A stretch of DNA of 64,000 nucleotides from Blepharisma stoltei ATCC 30299 (GCA_965603825.1 CBFDEM010000016.1:186001-250000), one strand, 5' to 3'. Positions 1 through 45,824 are shown, counted from the first letter of the stretch. Numbers and translations are program-made. The notes: a model not told the origin generated them from the letters alone.

Positions 1-3000
1 GTTTATTAAATGCATAACTCTGGAGCTGAGGTCCACCCTGGTCATAAGGACGTCATTATTTTGCAAGAAAGCCATAAGATTTTTTAAGAAATTTGTCTGG
101 TTGTTCACAAGTCCGGGTGTGTCCATATTTGGGCTGCTTTCAATACAAGAAATGATGCTTTCAACCAGCCTTGCTCGATACTCATCAGCATCAATTGTTT
201 TATTCAGCCAATGTATGAATTTAATTGCTTTAGGTGCCCTGTTCATGTCGAAATAGCAGAGCCTTGTAACGACTTTGTAAATTTGGAATAAGTGCTTATC
301 GTCCCTTGGCCTTTGGTAAAATCCAATTGGCTGCTGCTCATCAGATTTAACTAGCTTAGCACACCACGTTAAAAATGGAACCTCAAGCAGCTTTTCACAG
401 TTTTCTGGGTCAAGAATGATTTCTATTGATCTGAATACGTCAGAAATAAGCTCTTCATTGGTTTCTTGCTTTAACAAATCTATTAAGACTTCTAATGCTT
501 CAGGAAACACAATTCTTTTGACTGGCTCTGGGCCTTGGTTTGGAATTGCTTTGGCTGCAATAGAGGATAGATTGATAATTGTTTTTAGAATCCCTGACTC
601 TGGAGGATATAACAAGCCTACTTGGTTAAAACCATTTTGGGCAAGTATAAGGAGCATTTGGTAAGTGTATTTATTATTTTTTTGTTTCTGCAGAACACTG
701 TTTATCATATCAAAGCCACGGACTTTGAAAAACCAGCTCCTAAAGAGCTTCACTGACATATGGAGCAGCAGCCCAATAAACTTGATAGCTGCACATCTAA
801 TAGCTTCAGAAGGGCTCGAAAGAATACCAAACAGCAAAACCCCCCCATCTGCATTTAAAAACTTCTCTAAAAGTGCTTGATTCCCAATAAAAATATGAAG
901 ACTTATTATGCTCAGCATAGACACAGCTGAGTTTTCCATACATGCAAGATGAGTTTTAAGCTCTTGGAAAGTAAAAAGATCAAGCAAGTTATCAAGATGC
1001 TCCTGTCCCATCGAAATAACTAAATGTTCAAACAAAGAAAGTGAATGATACTCTAAACAATGGTATTCTTTTTCTGTCTGTTTTTTTATTAAATCAATAA
1101 GGACTTGGAAACCATTCACTTCAGAGCTTAAAAATATTTTTGCATTTTCTTCATGGCACATTAAGTTGCTGATTTCTTCAATGACGCCTGATATGAGATT
1201 TGGAGGCAAAACACATATTAAGTTAAGCAAAGCACACAACCCGCCAATTCTGTTTTGAGGGATAACTGGGATTGTTTCGATTTTCATAACAATCATTTTT
1301 CTCAAAGATATATGAGCTTGAGGAACATTTGAGATCGCAGATATGAGGCATTCTATTGAGTCAGCACTGGCGTATTCTTTGTAATTTGCGACTAAAGTCA
1401 TGACTGAGTTCCAGCCTCCTATATCTAAGAAATTTTGGTAATTATTTGGCGATTTTGTAATGAGCTCACAAATATATTCAATTGCTCTTGGCTGGAGCTC
1501 AGTTTTCATTATTGCGATAAACTCTGGGAGGGCTTGGATTTCATAGAGTGACTGCTTAATTGTGGTGGCTTGGTAAAAGTTTGAATTTTCAATTTGGTTG
1601 AGAACACCTTTATGAGTAAGCCAAATATTGCCAACTTTTATTGTGCCTTCAGGTGTTTCTTCTGGCAATTCATGGGCGATTTCTATCAAATTTGAGAGTT
1701 CTTGCTTTTTTTCTTCTTCAGGAAGCTTAAACACTGATTTTGTCTCAGAGAAATTGGTTTCTCCCAATAATCCTTCAGAATACATTGATGAAATTACAGC
1801 TGGATCTAAACAGCCTTCTAGGCAATTTATTTTAGACACCATAGATATCATTTCTTTGTCCCCAAAAATCCCTGTTATTGCATATTTTTCTTTTAATCCT
1901 GCAAAATAACTGCACTTAAACAGTGCGTATTGTTTACCATTTATATAAATTGTGACCCCTTGTTTACCATGGACTAATACAAAATGCTGCCACCTATCAG
2001 TAAACTCAAAATCAAATTGACAAGAGCTGTCAGCTGACTGTAAAAATGTTTGAATTGGGGCATTTACGATAATTTGTGACTGGATTAGGCTTGAATTTTT
2101 TATTAAGTCAAATGGTAAAAGTTTTTTATCAGAGTTGTGGCAATTTTTATATGAAAGCTGAAACAGCACAAGCCCTTTGTTATGGTCGACCCATGAAAAT
2201 ATAGGAATTTGGTCAGAGCTTGATCTTTTAATTTTGATCCAGAAAGACAGTGAGTACCCGTTTTTCGGAAATGATACAAGTTCTGGGGAGTCTAGTCTGG
2301 TGTTGTCAAGATAATAAAAAGAACTAGCTAATTCAAGCTGTAAACACTTAGACAATATCCCTTGGACTTGTTTCTGATAAGGATGGTTTTCATTTTTAAT
2401 AATCTGTAACAGAAGCCCGGCCTCTTCTTTGCTTACTGAGTATGTCAAAGTTGACTCTAAAAGTTTCAAGCAATGCTCAGCTGCAGGCTGAGAAAATAGT
2501 TCTAGGGTTTTCAATAAAATTTTGGGGACCTGCAGCAAATATAAAATTTTCTTATTCAAGTAAAATCTTGATAAAGCATGCAAGCATTTAATCCCTTCAA
2601 CTTGTATATCATGTGCTGACTTAAGCAGATAAATCAATAAACCTACTATTTGAGGAGTATTAAGTAGCTTTAAGTTACTATGGCTCATTTCAAACGCATT
2701 GCAGCAAGAAATCGTCGGAGTAAAAGGCTGAGCTATAGAGCTTGATGGAGCAGTACTGCCATGTCTACTATTAGTATGAGGGTCGAATAAATATTTAGGA
2801 TGAACAGCAGAAAGAATCAGATCTGATTGATAGGTAGGTAATGTACTTAAAAGCTGAGAAATATACCCGGAGTGCTCCAAGTACCCTGACTCTATGCTAA
2901 GATCTAACAATAAATGCAAAGATAGGCTTGTAAGTGGCAACGTATTTGCTAGCTCTTTATGGGAAATTAAATTATTGATCCTTAGTTTAAGCTCTCCAGA

Positions 3001-5136
3001 GTTCTTTGTAGACGCAAATAACAAGTTTTGATAAGGTTCTTCTGTGATGTGCTCTATGATCAATTCAAATCCTCCACTGCTTAAAAACTCTTCTCTTGCT
3101 GCAAATCCTCTAAATTTGTCAATATTTGCATAATCATCCAGTATAAGAATTTTAGTTGCAAATTCGACTTCTCCAGCTTTCACTAAACTGACTAAGACGT
3201 CAGAAATATTTTCAATACCCACTTTAGTTAGAAGAGACCTTTCAAATATCCATTCTCCAGTAGGCCCAAAGCCCCTCAGTTTAGAAAACTCGCGGACTTG
3301 GTCTGCTGTGAATAAGGTTAGCTTGGAATCTATAGCCATTGGAGAAGATAATATAAGCTCAGTATATAAGAGCTCAAACTGGATTAAGTGGCATAGGATA
3401 GGCAACGCGCACTCTTCTGAAACATTTAAAACTTCTAATGACGCTATAGCTGCAATTCTCATCCCATCAAATGAGGAGAGGAATGCGTTTTTCGCTAGCA
3501 AAGTCCTATTTGAGCATCTAGCATTTAGATCACTTATCATACTTGATAAAGTCTCACTTAGGATTGCTAAGTATTCTTTTTCTATCTCTCTCGCGTTATT
3601 TTTTATGCAGCTCCCATATATCTTAATCATCGCAACATTTTTTTCCCAAGCATTTCCCATTATGAAGCTTAAATTCCTGGTTAAATCGTCAAATGATTTT
3701 AACAAATCCAGCCTTTCCTCAGCCAAAATGTCTTGAAGTTCTCCATCTTTATAAAACCCTATAGGATTCTCAGTTCTCAGCACAATTCTTTGTAAAGCAA
3801 TTTCTAGATTTTCTAGGTTTTCTTTTTCATAGAAGCATAGCACGTTTTTCCAGTTGACTTCAATGATATGCCTTAAGGTCGAAATTGCTCCTTTTACTAT
3901 CCATATATTAGGTGAAGTGGCAGATAATTTTCCTAATAATTCAAATGCTTTGAGGTTTCCAATATGGTCTGACTTTCTTCCATCCATAACTATGGTTTTC
4001 AGGATTTTGAAGCATCCACCAAGGAATTCAATACTGCTGGTGGTTTCTGTTTTAATTTTGTTAAAACAGTCACAAATTAAGTCATAGCCTTCAACTTTTC
4101 TGAATTCTTTTTGATTTTTCACGTTATGCTCTAAAAGAATACTCAATGTTTCCATTAAATCTAGTTGAACCTCTACAGCAGCTTGATGCAAAGCTGTAAC
4201 AATAGTGGTAACTGCTCCTTGGACTTGTGAAAACTCATCAATAATTTCGTTTTTGGATTCTTCTTTAACAGGAGAATTTCCTGCTGAGAGACATCTTTCA
4301 GCCTCTTCTATTGCTTGAAATCGTTCTATATAGTTATTTGTAGCAGCCCTTATCATGGACTCAGAGGGTGGGAAAATCGTCGGCTCATCCTCTTCTTCCA
4401 TAGACTGATTAACTGATCTCTGAGAGTCATCATTCGGGAACAAGCTCCATGCAAGTTTGGTGACTCCTCCTATCACTTTTTTAATTTTGACTCTAATCCC
4501 TTCATTGTTTTCCACAATTTCAATAGGTTTGGCGTCCAAAAACTGTTTTATTGTCTTTATGACCTCCCTTGTCAGCTTTTCATTTTTATCCAGCAGCAAT
4601 TGCATGATTTTTTGTAAGCCTCCATTTTTGCATACTTCTTTTTTCCCTTCAATGCTAAAGCTGTTCACTAATCGCAATGCTAAGACTCGGGCTTGTTCAT
4701 CGTCAACTCTTTCGAAAAGCGTGATAATATTGTTGATCATCTCAGGGGAACGCTCTACATACTTACGATAGTGCTCGCTACGTACTAATAGTTCAAGAGC
4801 TTCAAGAAGTTTGTTGAGAAATATGCCTAAATTCTGTTCATTTGGCTGTAGACCTTCTTCTTCGAGGTAATGCTTTAAATGCTGAAATAAAAGGTCGAGC
4901 AACTCGGTACAGTCTCCGAATATTTGCTCAATTTGTGCTCTACGGTCAGAAGAATTGTAAAACTCCTTTACCGCATTTTGGAAGGAATCTAAAAAGTTGC
5001 TGAGAGGCGCTAAATCTTTAATTTTGGTACTAATTGGAGCTTACTCTATGCTTGCTAATGCTTTGTATTCGTTCCATAGTTCTTGAAGTCTTCGATAAGT
5101 TCGAAAATTTTGCCACTTTCGCCTAATCGATTGCAT
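1..5136 (-). CDS. Large BEACH-family (WDFY3/LvsA/neurobeachin-like) protein, N-terminal ~1700 aa; runs off the window start
   Basis: ATG at 5136 (MQSIRRKWQNF). A 15-nt intron at 5030-5044 removes an in-frame TAA, then the frame stays open to position 1 (no minus-strand stop-terminated ORF in the track). Mostly ARM-like helical sequence, plus a ConA/LamG-like segment FPKNGYSLSFWIKI...DRWQHF (~1980-2280) typical of BEACH proteins. The BEACH/WD40 part would lie outside the window. Confidence 0.7.
5030..5044 (-). other. 15-nt spliceosomal intron (GTAAGCTCCAATTAG)
   Basis: GT..AG, A at position 10, contains an in-frame TAA; removal restores the ORF (GA|T = Asp). Confidence 0.9.
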
Positions 5137-16434: not shown

Positions 16435-16595
16435 CACATGAGTAAATTATATGAAACTCTTAGAGAATTATTAATATTTGGGTTTAAACATTTAACATCA
16501 TATTCCTAGATGCAATCTTTACCTTTTAATTAAATAAAAATAAAATAAAAAAGTATTAATATAAACAACTAATGTCTAAAAATAATAATTAAAAA

Positions 16596-16883
16596 ATGTT
16601 TTCTCTACATGAATACAATGACAATTCCGTTTATGATGCAGAAACTCAAATTCTCGAGCAATTAAAAACCTTGCAGAGAGACGTCCAGACAATGAACAAT
16701 CGACTGAGCACAAGAGAAGAAATTTTGAAAACAAAAGAAAAGGAGAATAAAGAACTTAAAGAGGCTATCAAAAAGCTAGAGCAAAATATCAACCAACTAG
16801 CAGGCACTGCTGCAACTGATTTTTCTGATCAAGAAGAAGAAAATATAGTATGCTCTTGCACAAATAAATGCGAAATTCTTTAG
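16596..16883 (+). CDS. Small coiled-coil protein with CaaX (CEIL), 95 aa
   Basis: AAAAATG start, heptad-rich body, ends CSCTNKCEIL-TAG. Confidence 0.75.
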   Translation: MFSLHEYNDNSVYDAETQILEQLKTLQRDVQTMNNRLSTREEILKTKEKENKELKEAIKKLEQNINQLAGTAATDFSDQEEENIVCSCTNKCEIL

Positions 16884-17276: not shown

Positions 17277-20200
17277 TTAAAATTTGGATTTCTGCTTTTT
17301 CAGCACCTTGCTGGTCCCTCTTTTCTTTTTCCCAGAGTGCTCACGATTCTTCGGTCTTTTCCTTTCTTCTTTCACAGTTTTCTTTTCCTCTTCCTCAGCA
17401 AGCTCTTCGTCTGACCATCTAAGCTCATTTGATTCAGTCATTTTTGACAAAAGAGGTGGAAGTGAAACAGGCGAGTCATTGCTTTGTCTCCTTTTGAATT
17501 CCAAAACTTTGAAATTTTCATGGGTCAAATTTGCAGCGAGTTCTTTGATTTTTGAAGGTAAATTCATGCATTCTTTTAGAAGGGCGGACTCAGTTAAGTC
17601 TTCAGCGATATTCATTTCTTTGTTGTAGGGAATGATTTCTTTCCTCTCGATATTTCTTTCAACGTATGCTAGAAGCATTGAGGCTGACTCCAACGGAGCC
17701 AAAGGCTGAAGCTCGAATCTTTCGCAAGGATATCCAAGCTCAACTGGATAGCTTGTAATAATTAAGCTGAGCTTGTATTTACTATGCAAAGTTTCGATTA
17801 AATTGTGGAATTGGGCGTTTGAGTCTTTAATGATATCATCACAGTCATCTAAAATCAAAAGAATGCTTTTATTAGTAAGGTTCTGCTCCATATCATTGTC
17901 TTCGAATGACATGAATAAGCCTTCTTTTTCTAAATTTTCGTTAAATTGTGCAAGACTTCCTTGGGATTTCATGTTGATCCAGAAGACACCATCATGATAT
18001 TTATCTCTGGCGTATAAGTAATACCCTATATGCTTCGCTAATGAGCTTTTCCCTATACCTTTTTGTCCGACAATATGAACTAGTCGGGATTGAAGCAGTT
18101 TTTCAATAATCTCAAATGCTGCCCTGTGCCTTCCGACTAGGCTACTATTTGTTTTCTGAATATTCACAAACTGTCCTTGCTTAGATGTATGCAGCACATG
18201 TCCAGGAAATAGCACAGACTCATGAGAAAGGATGTCACTTGAAGAGTCACTGAATAACGCTGTGTCCCCTTTTCCTAATAAAATTGGGCCTTTACCTTCA
18301 TATAATTCTTCAATATTAAAATCATCATCATTTAAGTGCTCAAATAGCTTTACATTAGAATCAACAAAATCGTCGCTGATTTGTTTGGCAACTTTTCACG
18401 CATCTCTAACTGTTTTTCCTTCTACCAATAAGGTATAAAATTTTTCGCAGAATATTTCTATTGCTTTTTCAAACATCAATTGGAGCTGGGTGAGATATTT
18501 GCATAGTGGGAATTCTTTGTAGTCAAAACAAATCACAAAATTTATTCCTATATGGTTGATTAAGTATTCGCCAATTTTTTCAGAAAAAGGCATTGCTAAA
18601 ACTACAAGATCAAGGCCAGGTCTTTCTGTAACAGAGCCAAAGAGTTCATGCAATTCAGATATGGGGACTTTATCAGCGCTAAAATTGCTGCTCTCTAAGA
18701 CTAGAGATTCCATTTGTGGCATGCATGTAGATAGATGCAACACTTTGCATCCTTCTTTAATATACTCTATAAGCTTTTGTCTGTTTCCTACATCGAATTT
18801 CATATAAATTAATTTTCTCTTTTGATATAAAGTATCCAGAAGGCTTTTTTTGAAGCTCGAAAAATGAGTACAAACAACTGAATCTTGAGCAAAATTTTCA
18901 GTGTTTACATCGCCTGAAACTAGAGGAAATGCTCTTAGAACAACAATAACGTTGCCACTTCTTCTTCTAATCCTTTCAAATATCAAATTAAGCTGCTCAT
19001 TGATTTCTACTTCATATCTTCTGTCCTTATATTTTCTAGCCATTTCTAAAGCAAATCTTCAAGACTCCTCAGCAGCTATTAACCTTTCCATATTTAAATA
19101 TACTTTCCCCAAAAGATAAAGTGATCTTTCTTCTAGGCCTTTCAAGTTAAGTTCTTTGAATGTTTTATATGAGTACTGGAGTTTTCTGGCTATATCTTCG
19201 TCGCTATGGCTATTGGAAATTTTCCAGTCACAATAAGTTAAATATGATCTTGCAAGACCTGCACTCCCAATAGAAAATCTGAGGTCCTTAAATCGATTAA
19301 TTGCTTGCTCTAAGTGTTCTTCTATTTCTTCAATTCGGCTTTCTGTCATTTCTTTTGGTTTTAAAGGAGCATTGATTGAGATAATTGCTCTTAATAAATA
19401 GCTTTCAGCCAGACAGTCAAGCAGGCCATTGATTTCGAAATGCTGAGAAGCTTTTTCAGCTTGCTTAATAGCTTTTTCGATTCTGAATTTATTTTTAAAT
19501 TCTATTTTCATAGCGCTCCAAGATAGTCTCAGCTTATGCTTTAAAGAATCATTTGTCGTAAAAGTTTTTAAACATTTTTTTACGCTATCAATTGAATTAA
19601 ATGCTTGATTTTTCTTTCCCAAAAGCAAATATATGCACATCACACATTGCCCCATTTCAAAAATAAGATTTCCTATTTCAACTTCTCTCCGATTATTAAA
19701 TATTTGTCTTAAATAAGTTTCACTTAGAAAATCCCAAAAATTGCGCTCCATACTTTCGAATAATTTCTGAGGCGAAAGCTTCGAATTTGTAACTGTAGTT
19801 AACACTTCAGCAATTATTTCTTCACAGTTACAGAGCTTCCAGGTAGGAGATGGAGTTAAAGCATTAAAATTACTAACCGATTTCATCACATTAGAGCAAG
19901 CCATAGATGGCTGCTGACTAATAACCTGCATAAGTACTCTCGACAAAGACGTTAAGTATTCCATACAAATAATTGCATCATCCGCAGATGAAGAGATTTC
20001 AGATTTTATGTATTTTTTAACTGGCTCTGAAACCATCAAGATTTCTTCAGAAGTCGCTGAATCACATTTAACTAAATTGATATTCTCATACTCATCCAAA
20101 GAAATACTAGATCGCAAGTCATGGTTTTGTTCTTCCTCATCACCCATTGCATTATTTCCTTGGTGATCGCTTAAATGTATTTTCACAAGCCATTCTTCTC

Positions 20201-22394
20201 CTTCATGGGATTCTAAAAGATTCAGGGCATCTCTTCAATTGCAAGCTTGCTGGTGACATACAAGGTCTAAATTTTCTCTAAAAATTCCTGCAGGGAGTAA
20301 AGAAAGCAGTTTTATAAGACTGACAGATTCTGGCTTTCTATTCTGAAGATATGTAAGTGACAAATAAAGTGAGCGGCTTTCTTCACTGGCTGTAGGATTG
20401 GAATGATGAGACTGGTAGTCAATTAAAAACTCGTCGACTGATTTCTCCATAAGTACAGGCATCACTTGAAATAGCTCTGTAGGAGACTTGCCAATGCAGT
20501 TTAGAAGCTTTAAAATATCATTGCGAATTTTTTGATAGACTTCTGTCCTTGTTTTTATAAGCTTAGCTGCAGCTCTTTTGCTTAGCTCTTCAAGCTTAAA
20601 CTCGGCAGCTCTATCAAGCTTTATATTGCTTTCTCCGCTTAGAACAATCCAGAATTTCGGAAATTGAGTTCTCTCTACCCATGACGCGATTTTATTTTTG
20701 ACTTTTTCTTTGTTATGGGCGATTATTCCGCCAACATTGTCAATGATTATTAAAAGGTGCATATTTTCAATTATTCTTGCGATTTCTTCTTTACTTTTCT
20801 CCCAAGGGACGTTAAGGCTTTTAGCTATCATTTGGTTGATGGTGCTGGAATTTGTTTTGCCTTGAAGGTTCAAATATAAAACTCCATGCTTGAAAATTCT
20901 TCTTTCACAGGCATAATGGGCGACACTTTTAACTAGAAGAGATTTTCCTATTCCAAGTTTCCCATTTACTATCACTACTCTATTGTTTTTGCCGAGCTCC
21001 AACAGCTCTTGCATTTCTTTGTTTCTTCCTATTATTTTCTGGCGAACTGGAGGGGGTTTAAATAAGGTTTCATATGTGTAAGGCTCTTGGATTTCTTTTT
21101 GAGCCCTTTCAGAAAACAGAACTTTATTTGCAGCTTCTTTATCTTTCATTAGCAGCTTGAATTTCATAGCCTCATTGTGAGGAACTTCTGGTGAACAGCA
21201 GCAAATTACTCAGCTTCCATCTTTGACTTCTTGATCATTTGGAACTCTTGTTTTATTATACTTAGCTAAAAATTTCAAAGCCCACTCGCAGTTTAATTTA
21301 TGGACAGAATCATTATTTCTCTTTTCACATACACACTGCTCATTCGGAGTGTGCTCCATATGATCATTTTTCACTTTCCAAGTGCAATGTCTCTTATGAT
21401 TGTGTGCACAGCAACAAGTAGTTCTCATTGCTGCTTGCTCAAAGTTCACATTTTTCTTTGCTTCAATAAAAGAATTTTTTATTGTTTTGCCTCTGAGCAG
21501 ACTTCTATAAAAAGTGACTGCAAACGAAATTGCAGCATCATCCAATATTTTGCATTGGTCATGAATTGCAATTACGCAGTCAATTCCAGCATCCAAAAAT
21601 ACATGTCCAATGGCTTGTGAAAAGCAAGCGCTGACTATGACTATATTAAAGTACTGGCTTTGGGTTTCCAAAACTTTTTTCAGTCGGCTTTGGTTCACTT
21701 CATCCCTCATACCAAGGCATTTACTATCTTCAAATGCCAGTACAAACTCATTTGGTGAATTTCTTTGATAATACCCATGGCAGCTTATATGTATAATTCT
21801 CGGTTTCAGTTCAATTATTTCTCTTAAATGCTCCAGCGTAGCAGTCTCAAATCGTATTGAAGCATGGATTTGGCTTCTTTCAAAAGCTTCTAGCAGTTTT
21901 TTCCGCTCCATATCAAAATTCAAATTTCAATTGTCACATTCTTTGATTTTGATGCCATCTTTTCGAGTAAGCGGCGCTGCATATAGCATCGCTATATCAA
22001 GCGGTTCTGAGTTTGCTTTGACTTGATTTGTAGGCTTGAATTCGATATCATTTTTGAAGACAGAATGGAGTTGAGAAATATTGTTTTCTAAGTCTTCTAC
22101 TCTTTCTAATAGACTGCCAATTTCGCTTATTTGGGATCTTTGGATAAGGAGTTGGATTTCAGAATCGGTGGAGAGCTCTGTGCTTGAGGAAAGAATTTTG
22201 TAGGCCCCTATTTCTTCGTCGTAGTAACTCACAATTGTGCTTGAATTAGTCAATGCTTGATACTCTTGAAGAAGATTTCAAAGATCCAAATAAGAAATTT
22301 TATTACTAGTAACTAAGTTTTCAGGGATTGGGAAGCCGAATAGCTCAGAGCCTGAGCTTAGACTTCCTACGTCATATGAATAGCTTACCCACAT
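17277..22394 (-). CDS. CHAT protease / STAND NTPase tandem-duplicated NLR-like protein (1705 aa)
   Basis: One continuous frame from ATG 22394 to TAA 17277 with six TGA=Trp (22278, 21927, 21210, 20235, 19059, 18396); all gaps between track ORFs translated by hand. CHAT motifs IIHISCHG and IVIVSACFS. Walker A/B GKLGIGKS/LIIIDN. Second CHAT-like VLHLSTC/LVVLAMPFS. Second Walker A/B GQKGIGKS/LLILDD. Confidence 0.9.
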
Positions 22395-26677: not shown

Positions 26678-28027
26678 TTAAGGACATCTTCCAGCTTCAA
26701 ATGGAACATAGTTCATAACTTTCTGTAAAAATAGATCTTTGTGTCTTTCCACATGTGGTACCAGCTCTGGCATAGCAGGCATGACTTTGTTTGACTTCTC
26801 AACAGTTGGCTCTTCTAGGTATGAGTCGTTTTTGTCTTTGTTGAGATCTAAAATAATACAAGAAATGTCGTCAACTGTTACTTTTTTGGTTGAGGCTATT
26901 TTAAGTCACCTTAATCTTGCCTCTTCACAAAGGAGATGGGCAATGCATGCATTGCTAGGGTTTGGCTCAACATCTAAGGAGTGATCCAGTTCTTTTTGGC
27001 ACTTATCTCTATAAGCAGCAACGAAATTAACAACATCGTCGTTTGACATAACATTTCAAAGGCCATCAGTAGCAATGATGACGAACTCATCGTACTCGAA
27101 TTCAAGGTCATGGGTGCTGATTTCAGGGTCACAAATAACCCCCACCTGCCTTGCTACTTTGTCTCCAATGGTTCGCGAAGTGGCGAGGCCTGGAACACTT
27201 TCAGTTAGTTTATAGACCCTATAAGGCCCATGTTTGAAGCCTTTATCGCACTTTTTCTTAATACAGCCTCCACTCTCAAGGATCCTCATCATTTCTGTAT
27301 CTGAATCAGGCTTATGGTCAGAAGTCAGCTGAAATGGCTTAATTGGGTATGCGTCTGGAATTGATCTGTCTTTTCGGCAGTCTTCTAAGGTTGATTCCCA
27401 ATCTTCATTAGACCCTCCAGACATAGTTGGTCTAATAGGTCCTATAGCCCCAGATGCCAAAAGTGCTCTGGAGTCACCTACATTTGCAAAGTAAATTTGG
27501 CTTCCTTGAATTAAAACTGCAACTTGGGTTGTCCCTGAAGTACTGATCGGAATCCCACTTTGGCAGAGAGCTTGATCACAATGCTGAGTTGCTATAGTTA
27601 GTGACTGTTTTGGAGAGTGTAAGAAGTCTTGCTTGTGCTCTTGGTAGTAAAATTCAAGTTCTTGGCTGCAAAAGGCGCTTACTTTATGACCTTCATTACC
27701 ATGGCCATCATAGATAACCATGAGAATGTTGTTGCCGTCCTCAGATATTAGCAACTGGTCTTGGCATATTTTTGGGGCAAGGGTCTCTGATTTAAGGCCT
27801 GGGAGGATGCAGGCTGAGATGAAATACTTCCTATTCCTATGTCTGACTTCCCTAGCGAGGACCAGACTAGGGTTTGTGAGTTCAACGTGTTGTTGAATTA
27901 AATCTTCAACTTCTCCTCGTTTATTTCACTTTGGCACCTCGATAACTGTACTCCTAGGGTAGCTTAACTCAAAAGTCTTGGTAGTTTTTGAACTGTCTTT
28001 CTTGATGCAGCTGAGGCATGATCCCAT
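26678..28027 (-). CDS. PP2C/PPM protein phosphatase with MGSCLSC acylation-type N-terminus (449 aa)
   Basis: CQD, YDGHG, SGTT, NVGDSR, DHKP, LATSRTIGD, ATDGL-W (TGA 27056), DDIS. Further TGA=Trp at 27926 and 26906; stop TAA at 26678. Confidence 0.93.
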
Positions 28028-28615
28028 TTTATAGTTTATAGTTACCATCAAAAATGTCAAATAAATTCAACGCCTTGCCAGTATTCATAATTACAAATAT
28101 TAAGACTTAGACCGAATTAGTGCCTAAATTTTAAGATATAGATGTGGTGATACTTATTGTGTCGAATGCTGTGCAAATTAATAATTATAAATTATCCTAT
28201 CAATTTTTTATTAATTATATCTCTGGCGTTAGGCCATTTCTTAAGCTTGAAATTAAGAATTACGCCTTAATTATCCATAAAACGGTTAATTAGTCCAGAG
28301 GAAGCATGTATCAGGCTCTCAGAGGACTGCTAAATAAAACCCCTTCTCTTAATCGTTCAAACCAAAATTTTTTTGAAAAAAATTTTCTTCCAAAAAAAGA
28401 AATAGCGTCTAGATCTAGACGTATTTAATAAACAAAGATTTTTATAATCAATTTATATGATCAAACCTTAACTGATTATGCCTAAAACCTATCCATAAAA
28501 CCAGAAAAATGTCTATTATAATTAGGTATAAAGACATATAACATTTTTGAGTATTTCATTGAAATAGCATCTAGAATGATTATTAAGCTAAATCACGATC
28601 AATTGTAAAGAATAA

Positions 28616-30928: not shown

Positions 30929-31807
30929 TTAATTTTCGTTAGCTTGTTGATCGACTAAAGTGTCCATAGATTCTTTTTTGACTAAAGTGTCCATAGCTTC
31001 TTTTTTAATACTTTGAGAATTTGAATTCAAATTTATTTCCAAAAATGTATGAGCCGTGGATGTAGCTATGTTTTGTTTATATTTTTCTAAAAATTTGTGA
31101 TCTATATCTTCTTCAGCTGTAGATATAAAAGGGCTTTTAACATTATTTGCTATGCCTACAGAAATAAATTCAATATCCCTCATGACATCATTGTTTCCAA
31201 ACTCATTTACAGTTTTAAAAGCTTTATTTCCTGCTTCTCTAATTTGATTAAATTTTCTGACAAACCAACTTCTAATCCCAGTTTCTGGCGGAGGACTGAA
31301 AAACATCTCACGTGGGGTTTCCTTTGGAACTGATGCTAAAGCTTGAGCTTCTGGTGCTTGCTGAGCAGGAGGGGGAGGAGAATTAATATGTTCTTCTTGA
31401 TCTGGACGATTTCCATCTTCAAAGGATAAAAAACTTCCTTCAAAATTTCCTTCTCTTGCTATTTCTGCTAGCATGTTTCTATAAAATGCAGCTGCCCGCG
31501 TTTTGTATTTCAAAAGCATCGGAGTTTCTATGGTGATTCTATAGTACTTAAAATAGTCGCGTAAAGCTGCATTTCCTCCAGCAATCATAACTTTAATCTC
31601 GTCTACATCCCAGACTTCATCAGCTAGCACTTTAATTATACTGTCTACATTAATTTCTCGATGTAAAGCCACACATTTATAGCATATAAACGTTCCATAG
31701 TCAATATCTCCAAAGCCTGCACTTTGAATGTTGCAATCAGCGCAAAATCTATTAAACTTATCGTTCTTTAAAATTTCAAACACTTTTGATGCTAATCCTG
31801 GCTCCAT
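30929..31807 (-). CDS. ArfGAP-domain protein (292 aa)
   Basis: NRFCADC-x16-CYKC..HR, GGN, KYKTRAAAFYR. Confidence 0.9.
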   Translation of the reverse strand: MEPGLASKVFEILKNDKFNRFCADCNIQSAGFGDIDYGTFICYKCVALHREINVDSIIKVLADEVWDVDEIKVMIAGGNAALRDYFKYYRITIETPMLLKYKTRAAAFYRNMLAEIAREGNFEGSFLSFEDGNRPDQEEHINSPPPPAQQAPEAQALASVPKETPREMFFSPPPETGIRSWFVRKFNQIREAGNKAFKTVNEFGNNDVMRDIEFISVGIANNVKSPFISTAEEDIDHKFLEKYKQNIATSTAHTFLEINLNSNSQSIKKEAMDTLVKKESMDTLVDQQANEN

Positions 31808-31862
31808 ATCAATAAATTTTTATTAAATTAAGTATTATGGCTAAACAAGCTAAATTATAAAA

Positions 31863-32078: not shown

Positions 32079-32207
32079 CCCTTTAAATTCATTCACCCTA
32101 ACTCTTACTTCTTAAGACTTTCACCTCTTTATATGATCCTCCGCGCTGGCGTATAAGTTTTTTGTGTTTATGTTTTCACCATTTAAGTAATAGATAGCAT
32201 CCATAGA

Positions 32208-32690
32208 ATGGTAAGGATTACATAGTCATCTCTGGTGGTAACTCAAGAAAGCGAATTCAATTTCATCTTACGTATTCTCAATACCAACATTGACGGTCGC
32301 CGCAAGGTTATGTACGCTTTGACTGCAATTAAAGGAATTGGGAGACGCTTTTCGAACCTCATTCTCAAAAGAGCTGGAGTTGACCTTACCAAACGAGCTG
32401 GACAACTGACTGAGGAAGAAATCGAGAAAATCGTCACCATCATCAATAAGCCAACTGAATATAACATTCCAACTTGGTTTTTGAACAGAAGAAGGGATAT
32501 TGTTGTGGGGACTGATTCACAGATAGTTGCTAACTTTTTGGATGCAAAAATGAGAGAGGATTTGGAAAGGATGAAGAAAATGATGCTTCATAGAGGGCTG
32601 AGACATTGGTGGGGAGTCAAATGTAGAGGACAGAAGACCAAAACTACAGGCAGAAGAGGTAAGACTGTTGGTGTTGCTAAGAAGAAGTAA
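32208..32690 (+). CDS. RPS18: 40S ribosomal protein S18 (uS13), 2 exons
   Basis: ATG 32208-32210, then a 15-nt intron, then [46 protein letters not shown]. Confidence 0.98.
32211..32225 (+). other. 15-nt spliceosomal intron immediately after the start codon (GTAAGGATTACATAG)
   Basis: GT..AG, A at position 10, in-frame TAG; supplies the otherwise missing ATG for RPS18. Confidence 0.92.
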
Positions 32691-32889
32691 GCCAATAATA
32701 TTTTATCGTCAACTAGTTCGTGATTATAAGACAAATGGTTTGCAAACAAATAAAATATCAGCATTATTTTTTGCTTAGATTGTTCATAGAAAATGAAAAT
32801 CTGCTAATTCTTTTTCATATACATTCCTGATAATGAAAAAAAGAATTTAATAACCCTGAATAATTAAAAGTTACACCAAACTTTCTGCC

Positions 32890-36913: not shown

Positions 36914-39900
36914 TTAAATTCCAGGAATACGCAGCAATCCAACTTTAAAAAATTGAGTTGGCTCAGCAGCACTAATTTTTTCTATTTCCCTGCTTCTTAA
37001 ATCTTCAATAATCATATTCATTCTGTTCGAAAACAATCGAACTTGACTCGAAAGAATCTCTTTATCATTACAATTTTCTTGACCAAAACTAATTCTCTTT
37101 TTATTATAAACAAATGGCATGTCCGAATAAGAAGAGTTAATAGAGGGATCATTTTTATAATTTTCTCTCATTTCTTCAAGCTTTCTTTCTGTCTCTTCTA
37201 TAATTTTTTCTTTTTCTTGTGCATGTTTTGATTTTAACCTATCCATTATTTTCTTATAATATTCTTGTGTTTCTTTTTTAACCTGAATTTCAATTTCATG
37301 AGCTTTATCTTCTATTGCAGCTTGTTTAAGCTCTTCAAAATATTTTTTATAATCGTCTTCTCTTTTCTTAAACTTCATTTTTAATTGATGAGAAAGTTGC
37401 TTTAAGGAGTCACTTTTTTCTTTTTCAAATTCTAAGCGGATTAGTGTTTCTTTATCTTGAAGTTCTTTTTGGTGCTTGGATGTAAGAATATTTATTTTTT
37501 GCTGGAGTTTTTTGTCTCATTCTTTTCTTTCTTGGTCAAGTTTTTCGCTTTCAAATCTTTCCAAATCTTTTTTGGCGAGCTCTAAAGCGTTATGAGATGC
37601 TTCTTTTGATTTTCTAACGTCGCTTTCCATATCTCTTTTTTGCTTTGCAAATTCTTCTTTCATTTTTTTGATTTTTAATTTAAACTCTTCTTTAATTTCT
37701 TCTCTAATTTTATTAGTTTCAAGAGAGTTCAGTTCGCTAAGGTCTTCTATTTTTATGTCTTTTGCTCTGATTTCTCTTTCATACTGAAGTTTTTGTTTTT
37801 GCAATTTTTCTTCTCATTCCCTTTCTTTATCTTTGAAATTTTGTAGAAGTTCTTCTTGTGCTCTTTGGACTTCGGCTTTGGTATTTTGCTCTTTTAAATT
37901 CATTAATTCGTTGTGCCTAACTCTTTCAATTTCAAGCTGCTTATCTAATTCTTGATGAATTTCGTGAATTTTATCTTCATATTCTTTAAATAGCAATTTT
38001 TCTCGATCTTTTAATTTTTGTGTAAAGGCTTTGCTGTTCTCTAAATTTTCTCTTTCAAAATTTCTTTGCATCTCTTCTATTTTAGATTGGTATTCTTTTT
38101 CTACTTCTTCAAGCTTATTTTCCAATATTTCGTCTTTGCTTAAAAAGTCTTTTTCTAAGTTTTTATAATTTTTCAATTGATCCAGTGCCTTTTTATAATC
38201 ACTTTTCAGCTGTGATATTTGCTTTTCGTAATCGTTTCTTTCTGTTTCAAATCCATTTATTAATTCTGATTTTTCTTTATTCAATTTTTCTTCAGCTTCT
38301 TCTTTTTTGTTTTTTAGTACCCTTTCCATTTCATTTAACTTCATATTCATTTCAGCTTCATATTGTGCCCTCAATATTTTTTCTTTATTTTTTAGCTCTC
38401 CTTCTAGCTCTCGAGTTTTATTTGCCATATTTTTTATTTTTTCTTCATACGATTCTTTCACATTCTGCAGCTCCTCTTTTGCTTCATCATACACATTTTG
38501 ATTGGCTTCTTTTTGCTCTCTAATTGTTTTTAGATTTAAATTGTAGTCACTCTCAATTGACATAAGTTTCTTTCGGAAATCTTCTTCCATATTATTTGCG
38601 TTTTTTTCATATTCACTTTCAAGGCTTTTTACTCTTTTTACATAGTCTTCGCTAAGCTCATCAACTCTTTTCTGGTAGCTATCTTCTAACATCTGTTTAG
38701 CTGAGGCAAATTTTTTTTCAAATTTTTCTTTGATTTCTTTTTCTAGCTGTGGCTGCAAATTTTGAGTGCATTCTTTTTTCCATTTATCTTCTAACAGCTG
38801 CTGCTTCTTGTTCATTTTATCGACATATTCTACCTCTAGTTGATGCTTTATTTCTTCTTTAAATGAGGCTATGTCAAAGCTTGTTTGTGTTGATCTTTGG
38901 TTTTTTCTTAAAAACTCAGTTCTTTCAGCCTCCCAGCTTTCTTTTAGTTTTTTAAGATTTTGAGCAGCTTTTTCTTCGCATTCTTTTCGAATTTCATATT
39001 CAAGCTTTTCAGGGTCAGGGTAAGCCCTTATTTCGTCCTCTAATTCCTGGATTTTTTTTCCATAATCTTCAATTTGATATAAAAGCTCTTCTTTTTCTTC
39101 TTCAAATTGAGCATTCATTGATTTTATTGTAGACTTAAGCTTAGCAATCTCCTTTTCAGTATCCCGAGCCTTTTCTTTATTGACTTTAAACTCTCTTGAC
39201 GTCCCAACTTTTGAGTCGTCCAGTTGCTTCTTATAAGTATCTACCAATTTTTCTGCTTGATCCCTTGCAAACCTTAGGCTTTCCATTTCTTCTTTATATT
39301 GTCTATTCAAATCTTTAGACTGCTGCAGCTCTACTTCAATTTTCCTAATTGCTTTATTATGATCTAACTGCATTTTTTCAGTATTCCTCAGATCTTCTTT
39401 TCTTTTAGCTTTATCATCTTTGATCTGTTGAATTAATTCTTCTCTTTCTCTTGTTATTGCAAATCTTTCCTCATTCAGCTGCCTCTCAGCATTTTTTAAA
39501 TCAGTGACTTTATCTGTCAGCTCAGCAATCTCAGTTTGCAGTTTTTCAATTTCTGCTTGCATAATTGCAACTGTTTCTTTGGCTTCAGATTCATCAATAG
39601 AAATTTCTTTTTTTTCGCCTTTCATAAGCCTTTCAATTTGTACCTCGAAACCTTTTACTCTTTCTTCAAGATTTGAAGTCTTTTTCTTATATTGCTGGGT
39701 TTCTTTTTGTGCAGCACTTAGTTTTTCTTCATAACTGGATTTGATTTTGGCAAGCTGAGAGTCGTAATCTGCAGCTCCTGTTCTTCCAGCTTGAACATCA
39801 TTCAGCTGACTTTGTAAAGTTTCAATCATAATTTTTGCGTTCTGTATGTCTTCAAATTCACTCATTTTAATCTGATTTGCTTCTTTAATTTCATCTTTGG

Positions 39901-41320
39901 CAGCGTTTAATTCGTTTTCAAGTTGTTCTATTTCTTCATTTTTCTCTTTTATAATATTTGCCAACTCGTCTACCTGAGAAGTTAAATTTTTAATCTTTGA
40001 TTGATATGATTCTGATTTAGCCATCAATTCATTTTTGTATTTATCATTCGATTTTGATGACTCTTCCTTTTTTTCTATCAAATCTTGGATTCTTTTGTTC
40101 TGAGTTGAGTTCAAGATTTTCATTTTTGCGAGCTCTGATGTCAGCTCTTCTATTTCTTTTTCTCTCGCAGTATTGCTTTCTATCATATTTTTCTGTGAGA
40201 GTGCGTGTGCTAAGTCTTGTATTTTTTTATCCCTTTCAGATAAATATGTTTTAAGCTGTTTTATTTCAATTCTTGCATACTCAAGAGCTTTGCCTCTCAA
40301 TTGGTCAAGACTCGAGTTGTCTTTAGTTTTTGCCTGGATCATTTTTAGATGCTCTTCAAGCTCTGCCTTTCTTTGTTCACTGTCACTTTTTTCAGCTTCT
40401 AGCTGTTGTAAATAGTTACTGCAGTCATACAGCTCTTTTTTTGTGTTTTCATGAAGATCTTGTTCTGTTCTCAGCGCAATTTTTATATTAACCAGCTCAT
40501 TTTTCAGTTTTTGCATTTCATCACATATAACTGCATTGTCTCTAGCTTGGGCTAAAGAATACTCTGAGGCAAAATGGTGGTTCCCTGCATTTGCCAGAAG
40601 TGCGCTGCCTTGCGCGACAAGTTCTGTAGACAAGCTTGATCTTTGATAAGTCCTAAAGCTATGATTAGTTGAAGATCTCTTCGAAATTATGGTACCTGGA
40701 TTAAAATACCAATTTTGGTCTTGATTTCCAGGAGAAAACGTTATAACTTCTCTGCTCGGCATTTCTTCATGAGTCGGCAAGTCTAAAACAGGCAATCCAT
40801 GGGATGAGTCTGATCTTTTTTGTTCTTTTTCAAAAGAAGTCCGAGATCTCATATGCTGCACCATTGAAGAATCAGCGGCAGACTCATCCCACATATCTTG
40901 GTCCTGGTCGATGCTCATACTTGGTGCTGAAACCTGTGGAAATATCCCTTCAGTCGGAGTAATATGGCTTTTGCTCCAATCCATCATTCTAGACACTTGT
41001 TGTGAAGTAAATGCTTGAGAATGGTGCTGTGAATAATTGCTGTTATCTCTCGATTCCTCTTCAAACGGCAATTTAACATTATCAATTGGCGAAGTGTGAA
41101 GCGCTATTGAAGAATTTATCGAATTATCAAAATACTCTTCTAATTGCCTAGGAGGGGAATTCGGAGTTCTAGCATATACCTGAGACTCAGGCTCATAATT
41201 TGAACGGCCTGATACCATTGAAGAAAGATCACTCATACTTTCTTCAGGAACCTCAATCTGGTCAAGAAGGTCATGAATTTCTCTATTTCTTTGAATATCT
41301 CCTGTACGTTGACGTTCCAT
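36914..41320 (-). CDS. Very long coiled-coil protein (1468 aa)
   Basis: ATG 41320 (MERQRTG). TGA=Trp at 37814 and 37517 join three ORFs to TAA at 36914. S/P-rich head followed by about 1100 aa of heptads. Confidence 0.85.
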
Positions 41321-41377
41321 TTTATACAAGCCCGCAATGAAATTAGTGCGAATTATTTTAAATTGCAAAAAGGATTA

Positions 41378-41896: not shown

Positions 41897-42161
41897 TTTG
41901 GATTTATCATATTCAGATTTTTTAATTATGCATTATCAAAACAATTTTACTATTGATTGTGTTATTAATAAGTTAATTGTTAAAAGTATTAGTGCGCTAT
42001 GCTAATTTTTTAATTCATTATTAATAAAGCCTTTAATCTTAAATTAATTAAATCAGATCCAAATTACTATTATATTCGGAATAAAAATAGAATCCTATAT
42101 TTAAGTAATATTGGTGACTAATTCATATAGATATCTTTGAAATCATGAGCTAGAGAATAAA

Positions 42162-45100
42162 ATGGCACATTCCTTCAGATTTTCAATAGATCGAGGTGGG
42201 ACTTTTACAGACATTTATTGTGACTATCTCTCTGCTGATGGAAGTAGAATGTGCAAAATCATGAAGCTTTTAAGCGTTGACCCAGCAAACTACCCTGATG
42301 CGCCAACTGAAGGGATTCGTAGAATCCTCCAAGAAATCACTCAAATTGAATATCCAAAAAATATCCCAGTCAACACTCATCTAATCAGTTCAATAAGAAT
42401 GGGAACAACTGTGGCTACAAATGCTCTTCTTGAACGTAAAGGGAAACAATTTGCCTTATTAATCACTAAAGGCTTTAAAGACTTAATGATCATTGGAAAT
42501 CAGACTCGCCCTCACATTTTTGCACTAAATATCCAAAGAGGACAAAAGCTCTTTTCTGAAGTAATTGAAGTCAATGAAAGAGTTCAAATTGTCTCAAACC
42601 CACAAAATGCAGAAATTGGGACTACAGGAGAATATTTTAATGTCATAACTCCATTAGACACCCAACAGCTCACTCAAGACTTAGAGAACTTAAAACAGAA
42701 AGGAATTGAATCTATTGCTATTTGCTTTGCTCATTCTTATGCTTATAGGAAACACGAAATCCAAGCAGCTGAAATCTGTAGAGCACTAGGCTTTAGTCAT
42801 ATTTCAGTATCCTCAGAAATAATGCCAATGGTTAAGATGTATCCGAGAGCGTCTACAGTATGCATTGATGCTTATTTAACCCCTATTATAAAAGAATATA
42901 TTCAGAATTTCTGCAATGGCTTCGACGCACATTTGTCAGAAATTCCAGTTTTATTCATGCAGTCAGATGGAGGGTTGTCATCAATCGAAAATTTTTTGGG
43001 GAGTAAAGCAATTCTTTCAGGGCCAGCTGGAGGTGTTATTGGATTTTCACAGACTGCTGCTTCTCCACTTATAGGATTTGATATGGGAGGAACATCTACA
43101 GATGTGTCAAGGTATGCAGGCCATCTTGAGCATCTTTTTGAAACTGAAATCTCAGGAGTCCATCTTCAAGGTGCTCATCTGGATATTACAACAGTGGCAG
43201 CAGGAGGTGGATCAAAACTATTTTTTAGAAGTGGGCTCTATGTTGTAGGTCCAGACTCCGCTGGAGCACATCCTGGCCCTTTATGCTACAGAAAAAATGG
43301 CTATGCAACTATTACTGATGCTAATTTGGTTTTAGGAAGATTGATTCCAAAGTTTTTCCCCGAAATATTTGGCCCGGACCAAAATTTGCCAATTGATTAC
43401 AATGCTGCGAGAGAAGGGCTTCAACAGTTGACTAATGAAATAAATGCTTTTCAAAATTCTAATTTGACATGTGAAGAAGTTGCACTTGGATTTGTAAAGG
43501 TTGCTAATGAAAGTATGTGCAGACCTATTAGAGCACTTACCCAATCAAGAGGGTATGACCCAAAAAAGCACACCTTGGCTTGTTTTGGATCTGCAGGTGG
43601 GCAGCATGCTTGTGCTATTGCGAGATCTCTTGGGATTACAAAAATAGCTGTTCATAAGTATTCAGGGATTTTAAGTGCGTATGGCTTAAGCATGGCAGAT
43701 GTTGTTTTAGAAGATCAGCAGCCTTGTGCATTATATCTAAATGAAGAAAATATAATGCTTTCTATTCAGAAACTGAATGAAATGAGTTTGAAAATAGTTG
43801 ATAAATTCCAACAGCAAGGGTTCGTCAAACCAAACATAAAAATAGAAAATTTCATGCACTTGAGATTTGTGGGGACTGACACAGCGATTTCAATTCTTTA
43901 CACTGAAGGTCTTGATCTCAAACAAGCTTTTTATGAAATATACCTAAGAGAATATGGATTTGTTCTAGGAAAGAGAGACATAGTTATTGATATATTAAGA
44001 GTTAGGGGCTCTGCAACCTTAGATTCTATTCATGAAATAGAAATACCAGATAGAGCTGAAGCTGAGCCAATAGCAGTTACAAATGTATGATTTGAAACAG
44101 AAACTGGTTTTGAAAATCTCCCAACAAAAGTCTACAGACTTGAGTCTCTTGCGCACAATCAAACGATCAATGGCCCAGCAATAATTTTAAACGAGACATC
44201 AACAATAATAATTGAATATAAATGCACAGCAACAATTTCCCCTCATGGAAACGTCGAAATCCACGTTTCAAGTCTCAATCCCTCCTTCTCTGAAATTGAA
44301 TGTGATCCCATCCTTTTATCAATTTTTGGTCACAGATTCATGAGCATTGCAGAACAGATGGGAAGAGTCCTACAACGAACTGCAGTTTCTACAAACATAA
44401 AAGAAAGACTCGACTATTCATGTGCCATTTTTGACCCTAAAGGTAGCTTAGTAGCAAATGCTCCGCATTTGCCAGTTCATCTAGGATCAATGCAAGAAGC
44501 AGTAAAATCACAAATAAAACTTCTAGGCGATGATTGGAAAGAAGGCCAAGTAATTATGTCAAACCATCCATCAGCAGGAGGTACCCATCTTCCAGATATT
44601 ACGGTTATAACTCCAGTTTACTTCAAAGGAGAAGTTGTATTTTATCTTGCTAGCAGAGGACATCATGCAGACATAGGTGGATCCACACCAGGGTCCATGC
44701 CTCCTTTTTCACGATATCTGACTGAAGAAGGGGTAAGCATTAAATCATGCAAAATTGTGGTTGATGATGAGTTCCAGGAAGCAACTGTTAGAGATTTATT
44801 CAGAGAAAGCAGAGGCCTTGAAGACAATGTGAGTGATCTTAAAGCACAAATTGCAGCAAATAATAAAGGGATATCATTATTGAATGATCTCATAGAGGAG
44901 TATAGTCTCCCAGTTGTTCAAGCTTATATGCTTTATATTCAGCAAGCAGCAAGCCAAAGTGTAAAAGATTTGCTGTCAAAGGTCTCAGAAACTTCAGTTG
45001 TATTAAGATCTGTAGATTATATGGACGATGGGTCTCCTATATCTTTAGTGATAACTATTGATAAAGCTACAATGACAGCCCATTTTGACTTTACAGGGAC

Positions 45101-45824
45101 AGGACATCAAGTATTGAGCAATTTAAATGCCCCATACTGTGTATGCAGATCTGCAGTCATATACTGTTTGAGATGCCTCGTAGATACTGATATTCCTCTA
45201 AATCAAGGATGTCTAGACCCTATCACAATTACAATTCCCCCAAACTCTATTCTTTATCCTTCAGAAGATGCTGCAGTTGTCGGAGGAAATGTTCTTACAT
45301 CTCAAAGAATCACAGATGTGATCTTAAAAGCCTTCGAGGCTTGTGCAGCTTCTCAAGGATGTATGAACAATTTTACCTTTGGAAATTCAAAATTCGGGTA
45401 CTATGAAACTATATGTGGAGGTAGCGGAGCAGGATTTGGGTGGGATGGAGCAAGTGGAGTCCAAACTCATATGACAAATACCAGAATTACTGATGTAGAA
45501 ATAATGGAAAGGAGATACCCAGTTTTAATTAAGCAATTTAGCATCAGAAATGGAAGTGGAGGTGCAGGGAAATGGAGAGGCGGAGATGGAGTGGTGAGGG
45601 AGTTTCAATTTTTAGAAGAGCTACAAGTTAGCATTTTAAGTGAAAGAAGAGCGATGAGACCTTTTGGACTTAAAGGCGGTAAAGATGCCCAGCCCGGACT
45701 GAATTTATTAATTAGAAATGATGGAGTTACCATAAACTTAGGAAGTAAAAACACTTGCAAAGTGAATCCAGGCGATATCGTAAGAATATGCACTCCAGGA
45801 GGTGGAGGGTTCGGGGAGGAATAA
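42162..45824 (+). CDS. OPLAH: 5-oxoprolinase (ATP-hydrolysing), 1220 aa
   Basis: IDRGGTFTD, MGTTVATNALLE, SGPAGG, FDMGGTSTD, ERLDYSCA, HLGSM, SQGCMNN, YYETICGG, TPGGGGFG. TGA=Trp at 44088 joins the two halves. Confidence 0.97.

Follow-up and report, generated by a model that had tools for sequence, protein, structure and literature searches.

Proteins in which a protease of the CHAT type is combined with a STAND module are known as NLR-like proteins in fungi and bacteria (PMC8851545), and TPR-CHAT proteases that cleave gasdermins are also known from fungi (PMC8851545, PMC12881547) and from bacteria. The fungal HET-Q2-like and CHAT/S8 NLR-like proteins join a eukaryotic CHAT effector to NOD/STAND or to TPR, WD40 or ANK, and cleavage of a downstream cell-death executor has been proposed for the fungal CHAT proteins and shown for the TPR-CHAT protein Q2L-6 (Clave et al. 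2022, PMC8851545). Expansions of TPR-CHAT proteins are found in corals (PMC12314368), and the protease of SAVED-CHAT is switched on when a ligand induces it to form filaments (bioRxiv 10.1101/2023.06.23.546230). In this study, we analyzed a 64,000-nucleotide stretch of the genome of the ciliate Blepharisma stoltei ATCC 30299 (GCA_965603825.1 CBFDEM010000016.1:186001-250000), hereafter the window, in which a gene on the minus strand at positions 17277-22394 encodes a 1705-residue protein with two CHAT domains and two STAND NTPases. The gene itself was already in the public annotation, and CHAT-bearing NLR-like proteins were already known from fungi and bacteria. What appears to be new is a conserved tandem of one active-type and one dead CHAT domain, each followed by a NOD, together with an invariant Cys/His insert, a family-specific N-terminal domain, and a distribution across ciliates and a foraminiferan.

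The complete coding sequence (17277..22394) consists of 1705 codons and a TAA stop, with six in-frame TGA codons at residues 39, 156, 395, 720, 1112 and 1333 (window positions 22278-80, 21927-29, 21210-12, 20235-37, 19059-61 and 18396-98). No TAA or TAG occurs within the frame, and the other two frames of the same strand contain 141 and 171 stops. Across the window, which has a GC content of ~34%, many open reading frames (ORFs) on both strands are lengthened once TGA is treated as a sense codon. The macronuclear genome of this strain has been described as 41 Mbp in size, 66% AT and gene-dense, with introns of 15-16 bp and UGA translated as Trp (PMC9942806). Our search of the genome (41.46 Mb, 64 contigs) identified three further paralogs, on contigs C43, C27 and C62, for a total of four copies. 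We aligned the four genomic copies with X placed at each TGA and found 14 columns within the protein that contain a TGA. In 12 of these, the three closer paralogs carry either W or TGA, with W, Y, F or some other residue in the fourth, which directly shows that TGA encodes Trp in this gene. On this sequence evidence, the frame is a single intron-less gene of a ciliate in which UGA is Trp. Under the standard code it falls into seven ORFs, as expected of a decayed pseudogene or of a group of separate short genes in which TGA is a true stop. That explanation is barely credible and was rejected, as the TGA codons match TGG in the paralogs, a frame of this length is free of TAA and TAG, and the ratio of nonsynonymous to synonymous divergence (dN/dS) is 0.07; the published genetic code and the public 1705-residue gene model stand against it as well. 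In addition, homologs are found as a single standard-code ORF (1650 residues) or fill one-gene nanochromosomes, which shows independently that the whole architecture is one polypeptide.

The original prediction, which had been made from the DNA alone, joined six ORFs into one frame by reading TGA as Trp, and the 1705 codons, six TGA codons and matching W columns all bear this out. Its description of the gene as hidden was incorrect. A 1705-residue model in the public protein collection (P0158) is identical to the window translation at every residue, including W at all six TGA codons, and was annotated with the correct code and no intron. In addition, the C43 paralog is present as GenBank CAG9327374.1 (UniRef100_A0AAU9JN10) under the name "CHAT domain-containing protein" from Blepharisma stoltei, so that automatic naming already recognizes the CHAT domain and the gene is not hidden. 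The C27 paralog carries the database name "AAA+ ATPase domain-containing protein".

Evidence for the domain architecture was obtained from profile searches and from two structure models, covering residues 1-420 (model 1) and 721-1340 (model 2), which were based on alignments of 20-21 family members and had a mean predicted local distance difference test score (pLDDT) of 81 and 82, respectively. All domain and motif coordinates of the window protein are on the minus strand. The first CHAT domain, CHAT1 (residues 131-320; 21435..22004), was matched by the Pfam CHAT profile (PF12770, clan CD) with a score of 56 bits, well over the cut-off of 24 bits (E 5e-15), and by the sequence of the CHAT domain of PDB entry 8tl0 (E 1.3e-4). 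Model 1 contains a caspase-like alpha/beta domain at residues 134-320 followed by a less regular Cys/His-rich region at residues 327-420, and its best Foldseek match was to SAVED-CHAT (8tl0, E 4e-9), followed by Csx29, DdvA, MALT1, caspase-9 and metacaspases. In model 1, His206-Gly207 lies just past the strand formed by residues 200-204 and Cys257 just past that formed by residues 251-255, the canonical caspase arrangement. The His206 codon (21777-21779) is within the motif HISCHG (21774-21791) and the Cys257 codon (21624-21626) is within VSACFS, and the dyad is kept within the clade to which the window protein belongs. Based on the dyad and the modeled fold, CHAT1 is predicted to be an active-type protease.

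Two further regions precede CHAT1. The first 85 residues (22140..22394) form an alpha/beta domain of seven short strands and one helix in model 1, with block-mean pLDDT values mostly of 83-93 and dips to 64 and 77. No relatives of this domain were detected outside the protein's own family: Pfam and PDB profile searches gave coiled-coil matches only, and a protein-atlas feature search was blank. Residues 88-116 (22047..22133) are one long helix in model 1, and the family profile matched GCN4-type coiled coils with an E of 1e-4.

Between CHAT1 and the first NTPase is an insert rich in Cys and His (residues 327-406; 21177..21416), with the pattern CCCxHxHx3C ... HxxH ... CxC ... Hx3C ... CCC ... 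H. Its 14 Cys and His residues (C327-329, H331, H333, C337, H348, C356, H365, C369, C398-400 and H406) are invariant across 20 family members, and most show little or no variation in a set of 25 sequences to which the nanochromosomes and the foraminiferan contribute. No Pfam or PDB sequence match to the insert was found, and it is presumed from its sequence pattern to be a metal-binding module. The two CCC triplets could also conceivably be acylation sites.

STAND NTPase 1 (residues 455-720; 20235..21032) was matched by the Pfam NACHT profile with 40.1 bits against a cut-off of 26.7 (E 4e-10), with weaker matches to NB-ARC and nSTAND3. Its Walker A motif GKLGIGKS (20940-20963) and Walker B motif LLIIIDN (20736-20756) are kept across the family, and a winged-helix-like motif, KLLSLLPAGIF, is present at 20259-20312. 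STAND NTPase 2 (residues 1415-1640; 17475..18152) was matched by NB-ARC with 31.3 bits against 23.5 (E 1.6e-7) and by NACHT with 29.6 bits against 26.7 (E 7e-7), and has a Walker A motif GQKGIGKS (18045-18068) and a Walker B motif LLILDD (17844-17861; LLILDDCDD starting at 17861) that are likewise kept in the family. Searches of both NTPase regions against PDB sequences gave nothing significant. By eye, NTPase 1 reads DNVGG after Walker B, with the acidic pair absent in the window paralog, where most relatives read DNIDP; NTPase 2 reads DDCDD, and has "IITSYP" with a Tyr where "TSR" is usual.

Between the two NTPases, an acidic, Ser-rich linker (residues 743-782; 20049..20168) is predicted to be disordered, with a pLDDT below 50 in model 2 and a variable length that results from indels between the paralogs. 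It is followed by a TPR-like alpha-solenoid (residues 804-1145; 18960..19985), the presumed sensor or interaction arm, for which model 2 has ~17 helices with a pLDDT of 80-96 before an alpha/beta domain at residues 1149-1340. Foldseek matched model 2 to the TPRs of LGN, Pins and Rap and to the STAND-TPR protein 6mfv, DdvA aligned across both the TPR region and the second CHAT domain, and a weak Pfam TPR_12 match was found in the C62 paralog. That second domain, CHAT2 (residues 1149-1340; 18375..18950), had no Pfam match. Its homology to CHAT1 was evident by BLASTP (E 4e-6) and by profile-profile comparison with hhalign (95.8% probability, E 7e-9), and the corresponding part of model 2 was matched by Foldseek to the CHAT domain of 8tl0 (E 2e-4, probability 1.0). 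Both the His-Gly and the Cys are missing from CHAT2, where the two positions read LHLSTCMP (18717-18740) and VLAMPFS (18582-18611), and the domain is termed a pseudo-protease here. It is dead in all family members in which it was examined, including the nanochromosome and foraminiferan proteins, while "A-x-P-F/W-S" is kept. The protein ends in a poorly conserved tail (residues 1641-1705; 17280..17474) that has an acidic run and then a K/R-rich end; the tail of the C62 paralog is not basic.

These results agree with the domain order proposed in the original prediction, and the positions it gave for the motifs were all exact. The His-Cys dyad on a caspase fold, the two STAND NTPases with their Walker motifs, the helical TPR-like region and the second CHAT-like domain were each recovered by the profile, homology or structural evidence above, the last of these without its catalytic residues. 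The proposal that the protein is a head-to-tail fusion of two receptor units was correct in part. The two NTPases are 26% identical (BLASTP E 6e-12) and the next-best genomic matches of the first NTPases are the second NTPases, which, with the homology of the two CHAT domains, indicates that a CHAT-NTPase unit was duplicated internally. The units are not equal, since the second has a dead CHAT and lacks both the Cys/His insert and sensor repeats of its own, an asymmetry that is ancient and conserved across the family.

To determine how widely this architecture occurs, we scanned 1.84 billion representative proteins with HMMER, taking as the query the N-terminal half of the C62 paralog, which has no stops, and obtained 649 matches at E <=1e-3 and 58 at E <=1e-30. 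Domain hidden Markov models (HMMs) built from 21 full-length members then identified the full order, from N-terminal domain through CHAT1, Cys/His insert, NTPase 1, TPR and CHAT2 to NTPase 2, in many proteins of 1600-2200 residues, and the two-unit layout is kept at 20-40% identity in dozens of proteins of that size. Most homologs are from metagenome or Logan contigs, and their taxonomy is inferred except for B. stoltei, the foraminiferan Nonionella stella and the nanochromosomes with C4A4 telomeres. The 1650-residue single-ORF homolog, which uses the standard code, is on a 41.8-kb metagenome contig that is dense in eukaryotic genes. Homologs of 1898 and 2068 residues each fill one contig of 5.9-8.7 kb with C4A4/G4T4 telomere caps, and these contigs are one-gene nanochromosomes of what is inferred to be a spirotrich-type ciliate. 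Their GC content of 56-58% is unusually high for a spirotrich. The nanochromosome homologs are on contigs L024-L026 (5.9 kb) and L020-L023 (6.5-8.7 kb), from NCBI GCA_003202625.1 and runs SRR23300978-85. The N. stella protein (EukProt, 2333 residues) has both CHAT domains and both NTPases, together with part of the Cys/His module. The family, with its asymmetric two-unit layout, appears to span two or more ciliate lineages and also a foraminiferan. Homologs of ~770 residues that seemed to be a single-unit architecture of their own were not counted, as they may be truncated gene calls; one, P0026, is directly followed by another ORF that continues to the contig end.

Both Walker A motifs are kept throughout the family, and the His-Gly and Cys of the active site are present in 81 of 121 domain matches to the CHAT1 model, a set that includes some second CHATs. 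In a tree of 33 full-length members (FastTree only, midpoint root), the proteins that lack the CHAT1 dyad form one clade (support 100) that includes the C62 paralog. This clade is sister to that of the window protein (support 95), and both are apart from the nanochromosome group. The C62 paralog (G000:C62:197090-202138; L015 1590-6638, plus strand) has lost the CHAT1 His (YISSQG), also has a dead CHAT2 and contains only two in-frame TGA codons; the "doubly dead" clade it typifies is monophyletic and has retained both Walker A motifs.

The prokaryotic relatives that were detected are simpler, being single-unit CHAT-NB-ARC-TPR proteins of ~950 residues. Their layout (e.g., P0123, on an archaeal-type contig) corresponds to the first unit of the Blepharisma protein, from which they differ in having one unit only and no Cys/His insert, N-terminal domain or second dead unit. 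The first unit may have a prokaryotic relative in a 956-residue single-unit protein at L027 4236-7106, whose contig contains genes of archaeal type (ribosomal S17e, Pcc1).

Comparison to characterized systems highlights how the Blepharisma protein differs from each. The fungal CHAT proteins have one unit, an adjoining gasdermin gene and no Cys/His insert, whereas the Blepharisma protein has two units, the second with a dead CHAT, is not in a gene cluster, and is from a ciliate. There was also no match to the Pfam gasdermin profile (PF04598) in its own genome, a result that is uninformative since the control genomes were blank too. The SAVED-CHAT protein of Haliangium ochraceum (8tl0) was the best match of both CHAT1 and CHAT2 and is likewise an oligomerization-activated, or in our case putatively oligomerization-activated, CHAT; it differs in being part of a bacterial CRISPR/CBASS system with a SAVED sensor that binds cA3, and in having one CHAT with neither a STAND NTPase nor TPRs. 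In Csx29 of Craspase (7zoq, 8eey) and the anti-sigma factor DdvA (8rw5), a TPR region is also followed by a CHAT, but there the CHAT after the TPRs is active, whereas in the Blepharisma protein it is dead and the active-type CHAT is upstream of a STAND NTPase. The Apaf-1/caspase-9 apoptosome and NLRC4/caspase-1 inflammasome resemble it in that a STAND switch with a repeat sensor acts on a caspase-fold protease by induced proximity, although in those animal systems the protease is a separate chain recruited via CARD domains. An inactive caspase-fold copy is kept beside an active one as a regulator in separase, which has pseudo-protease and active protease domains, and in cFLIP with caspase-8; in the Blepharisma protein the two CHAT copies are ~900 residues apart with an NTPase and the TPR region between them. 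No LRR sensor is present, the repeat region being TPR-like, and the protein should therefore be called NLR-like or STAND rather than NLR. Matches to family-specific defense models for Avs/NACHT anti-phage proteins were limited to weak PADLOC P-loop hits (mad8, PDC-S01 and TRIP13, all <30 bits), and the NCBIfam model DS8 scored 22.9 bits against a cut-off of 790. The original prediction knew of no CHAT/STAND system of this type in ciliates, and our literature searches for CHAT or STAND proteins in ciliates, within the searchable library, likewise found nothing relevant; neither CHAT nor NACHT is mentioned in the supplement to the B. stoltei genome paper.

The four paralogs provide information on the selection acting on this family. 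The window gene, on contig C16, is 79% identical to its closest paralog, that on C43, with a proportion of differences of 0.70 at synonymous sites (pS), which are saturated, and of 0.12 at nonsynonymous sites (pN), giving an overall dN/dS of ~0.07. By region, dN/dS in this comparison was 0.024 for CHAT1, 0.05 for the TPR region, 0.06 for each NTPase and 0.25 for the N-terminal domain and tail. The pN of CHAT2 (0.12) is close to the gene-wide average and, with dS saturated, indicates that this dead domain has been maintained. Within the genome the Pfam CHAT profile matched only these four paralogs, and NACHT was matched at about eleven places. Neither diversifying selection nor expansion was seen, and a diversifying repertoire of immune receptors is unlikely given that there are only four old paralogs under strong purifying selection. 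The window gene has housekeeping genes as neighbors, namely one for a pyridine-nucleotide disulphide oxidoreductase and one for a coiled-coil protein, and the locus is not a defense island.

Together, these features make it most likely that the 1705-residue protein is a nucleotide-gated, oligomerization-activated caspase-like protease, a reading that is by analogy with apoptosomes, NLRs and SAVED-CHAT and to which we assign a probability of roughly 60%. In Apaf-1, NLRC4, Avs and bacterial NACHT proteins, binding by the repeat arm frees the NTPase for nucleotide exchange and oligomerization. Potentially, the TPR arm of the Blepharisma protein would bind a ligand or protein partner and so free NTPase 1 for the same steps, and oligomerization would then gather the N-terminal CHAT domains and turn on proteolysis, as in SAVED-CHAT filaments. 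The dead CHAT and second NTPase are best viewed as a built-in regulatory unit, which might pair with the active CHAT in cis, serve as its decoy or form a second layer of assembly, and the C62-type paralogs with a dead CHAT1 may serve as non-catalytic partners. Several points weigh against such a mechanism. The support for the active site of CHAT1 is confined to the strand-end topology and fold matches of a model. The Walker B of NTPase 1 reads "DN", the window protein is without the downstream acidic pair of most relatives, and the sensor-1 arginine is not obvious by eye in either NTPase; as hydrolysis requires both of these features, it may be weak or absent, and one or both NTPases may bind nucleotide rather than hydrolyze it. 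The decoy idea is without support, as a prediction of the complex between CHAT1 (residues 130-325) and CHAT2 (residues 1140-1340) scored 0.00 and gave no answer, and is neither for nor against contact.

Two other explanations for the protein were considered. Possibly, it is a true analogue of NLR and Avs proteins, that is, an innate immune receptor whose TPRs detect a viral, bacterial or endosymbiont molecule and whose protease triggers abortive cell death. The effector-NOD-repeat layout is that of the gasdermin-controlling CHAT-NLR-like proteins of fungi and bacteria (PMC8851545), the structural neighbors of CHAT1 are proteins of bacterial conflict systems, and the weak PADLOC and NCBIfam matches were to anti-phage P-loop models. 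We consider this explanation unlikely, since all four paralogs are old, purifying selection extends to the TPR region itself, there has been no lineage-specific expansion of CHAT genes in the genome and the neighbors are housekeeping genes; the lack of a gasdermin match also counts against it, albeit as a weak test. With its few copies and strong purifying selection, the family is more readily explained as a conserved switch in stress responses, cell fate or development than as a rapidly evolving repertoire of pathogen receptors, and could be either a switch comparable to Apaf-1 or a regulated protease with no part in death. The role in innate immunity, cell death or nuclear death suggested by the original prediction was pure conjecture, and the age of the paralogs, their dN/dS and their neighbors are unlike those of an arms-race family.

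A somewhat less probable explanation still is that the protein is a non-proteolytic scaffold or NTP-dependent assembly factor in which the CHAT domains are interaction modules and the dyad of the window protein is a relic. The sister clade that includes the C62 paralog lends this some weight, having lost the CHAT1 His and usually the Cys while keeping both Walker A motifs and the full layout, as does the dead state of the second CHAT in all members examined. It is difficult to reconcile with CHAT1 being the most constrained domain of the window paralog, and with the retention of His-Gly and Cys in two-thirds of the CHAT1-model matches, some second CHATs included.

Little is understood of the molecular basis of regulated cell death and innate sensing in protists. 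Ciliates are not known to have canonical caspases, and caspase-like activities have been reported in ciliate nuclear death. The four paralogs place a protease on one chain with two STAND switches in a layout shared by distant ciliates and a foraminiferan. Should the protease be gated by oligomerization, as in the reading we favor, the family would be a concrete candidate for the caspase-like activities of ciliate nuclear death, and would represent a natural pair of active and dead proteases wired into a double NOD. It is tempting, although doubtful at present, to view the two-unit proteins of ciliates and one or more foraminiferans as an undescribed apoptosome-like machine that is ancient, with an origin of protease-coupled STAND signaling apart from that in animals and fungi. 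In this view, the dead unit and the wholly dead clade would pair with the active unit to gate the protease, which would carry out a regulated decision on cell fate, e.g., the programmed death of nuclei at conjugation, encystment, or death in response to infection. No known counterpart exists for the Cys/His module that separates the protease from the NTPase, and it may be a new metal-binding regulatory element. If the protein is a housekeeping scaffold instead, the finding still defines an uncharacterized and widespread protist family.

With regard to the wider locus, the C16 and C43 regions are an old inverted segmental duplication that includes a ribosomal protein S18 gene. The duplicated segment includes window positions 26678-28090, 30929-31819, 32183-32803 and 16593-16883, with counterparts on G000:C43 (L017 2347-6066, L013 7138-7803), and several flanking genes are common to both loci with protein identities of 45-88%. 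The protein encoded by the ribosomal protein S13/S18 (uS13) gene (32226-32687, plus strand) is 100% identical to that of the C43-locus copy, though the surrounding duplicates have diverged; a long ORF antisense to it (32183-32803) is probably spurious. The window also has three further ORFs of great length in which TGA codons are few or absent: one at 1-5040 (minus strand) that encodes at least 1680 residues and runs off the window start, one at 36914-41374 (minus strand, 1487 residues) and one at 42105-45824 (plus strand, 1240 residues).

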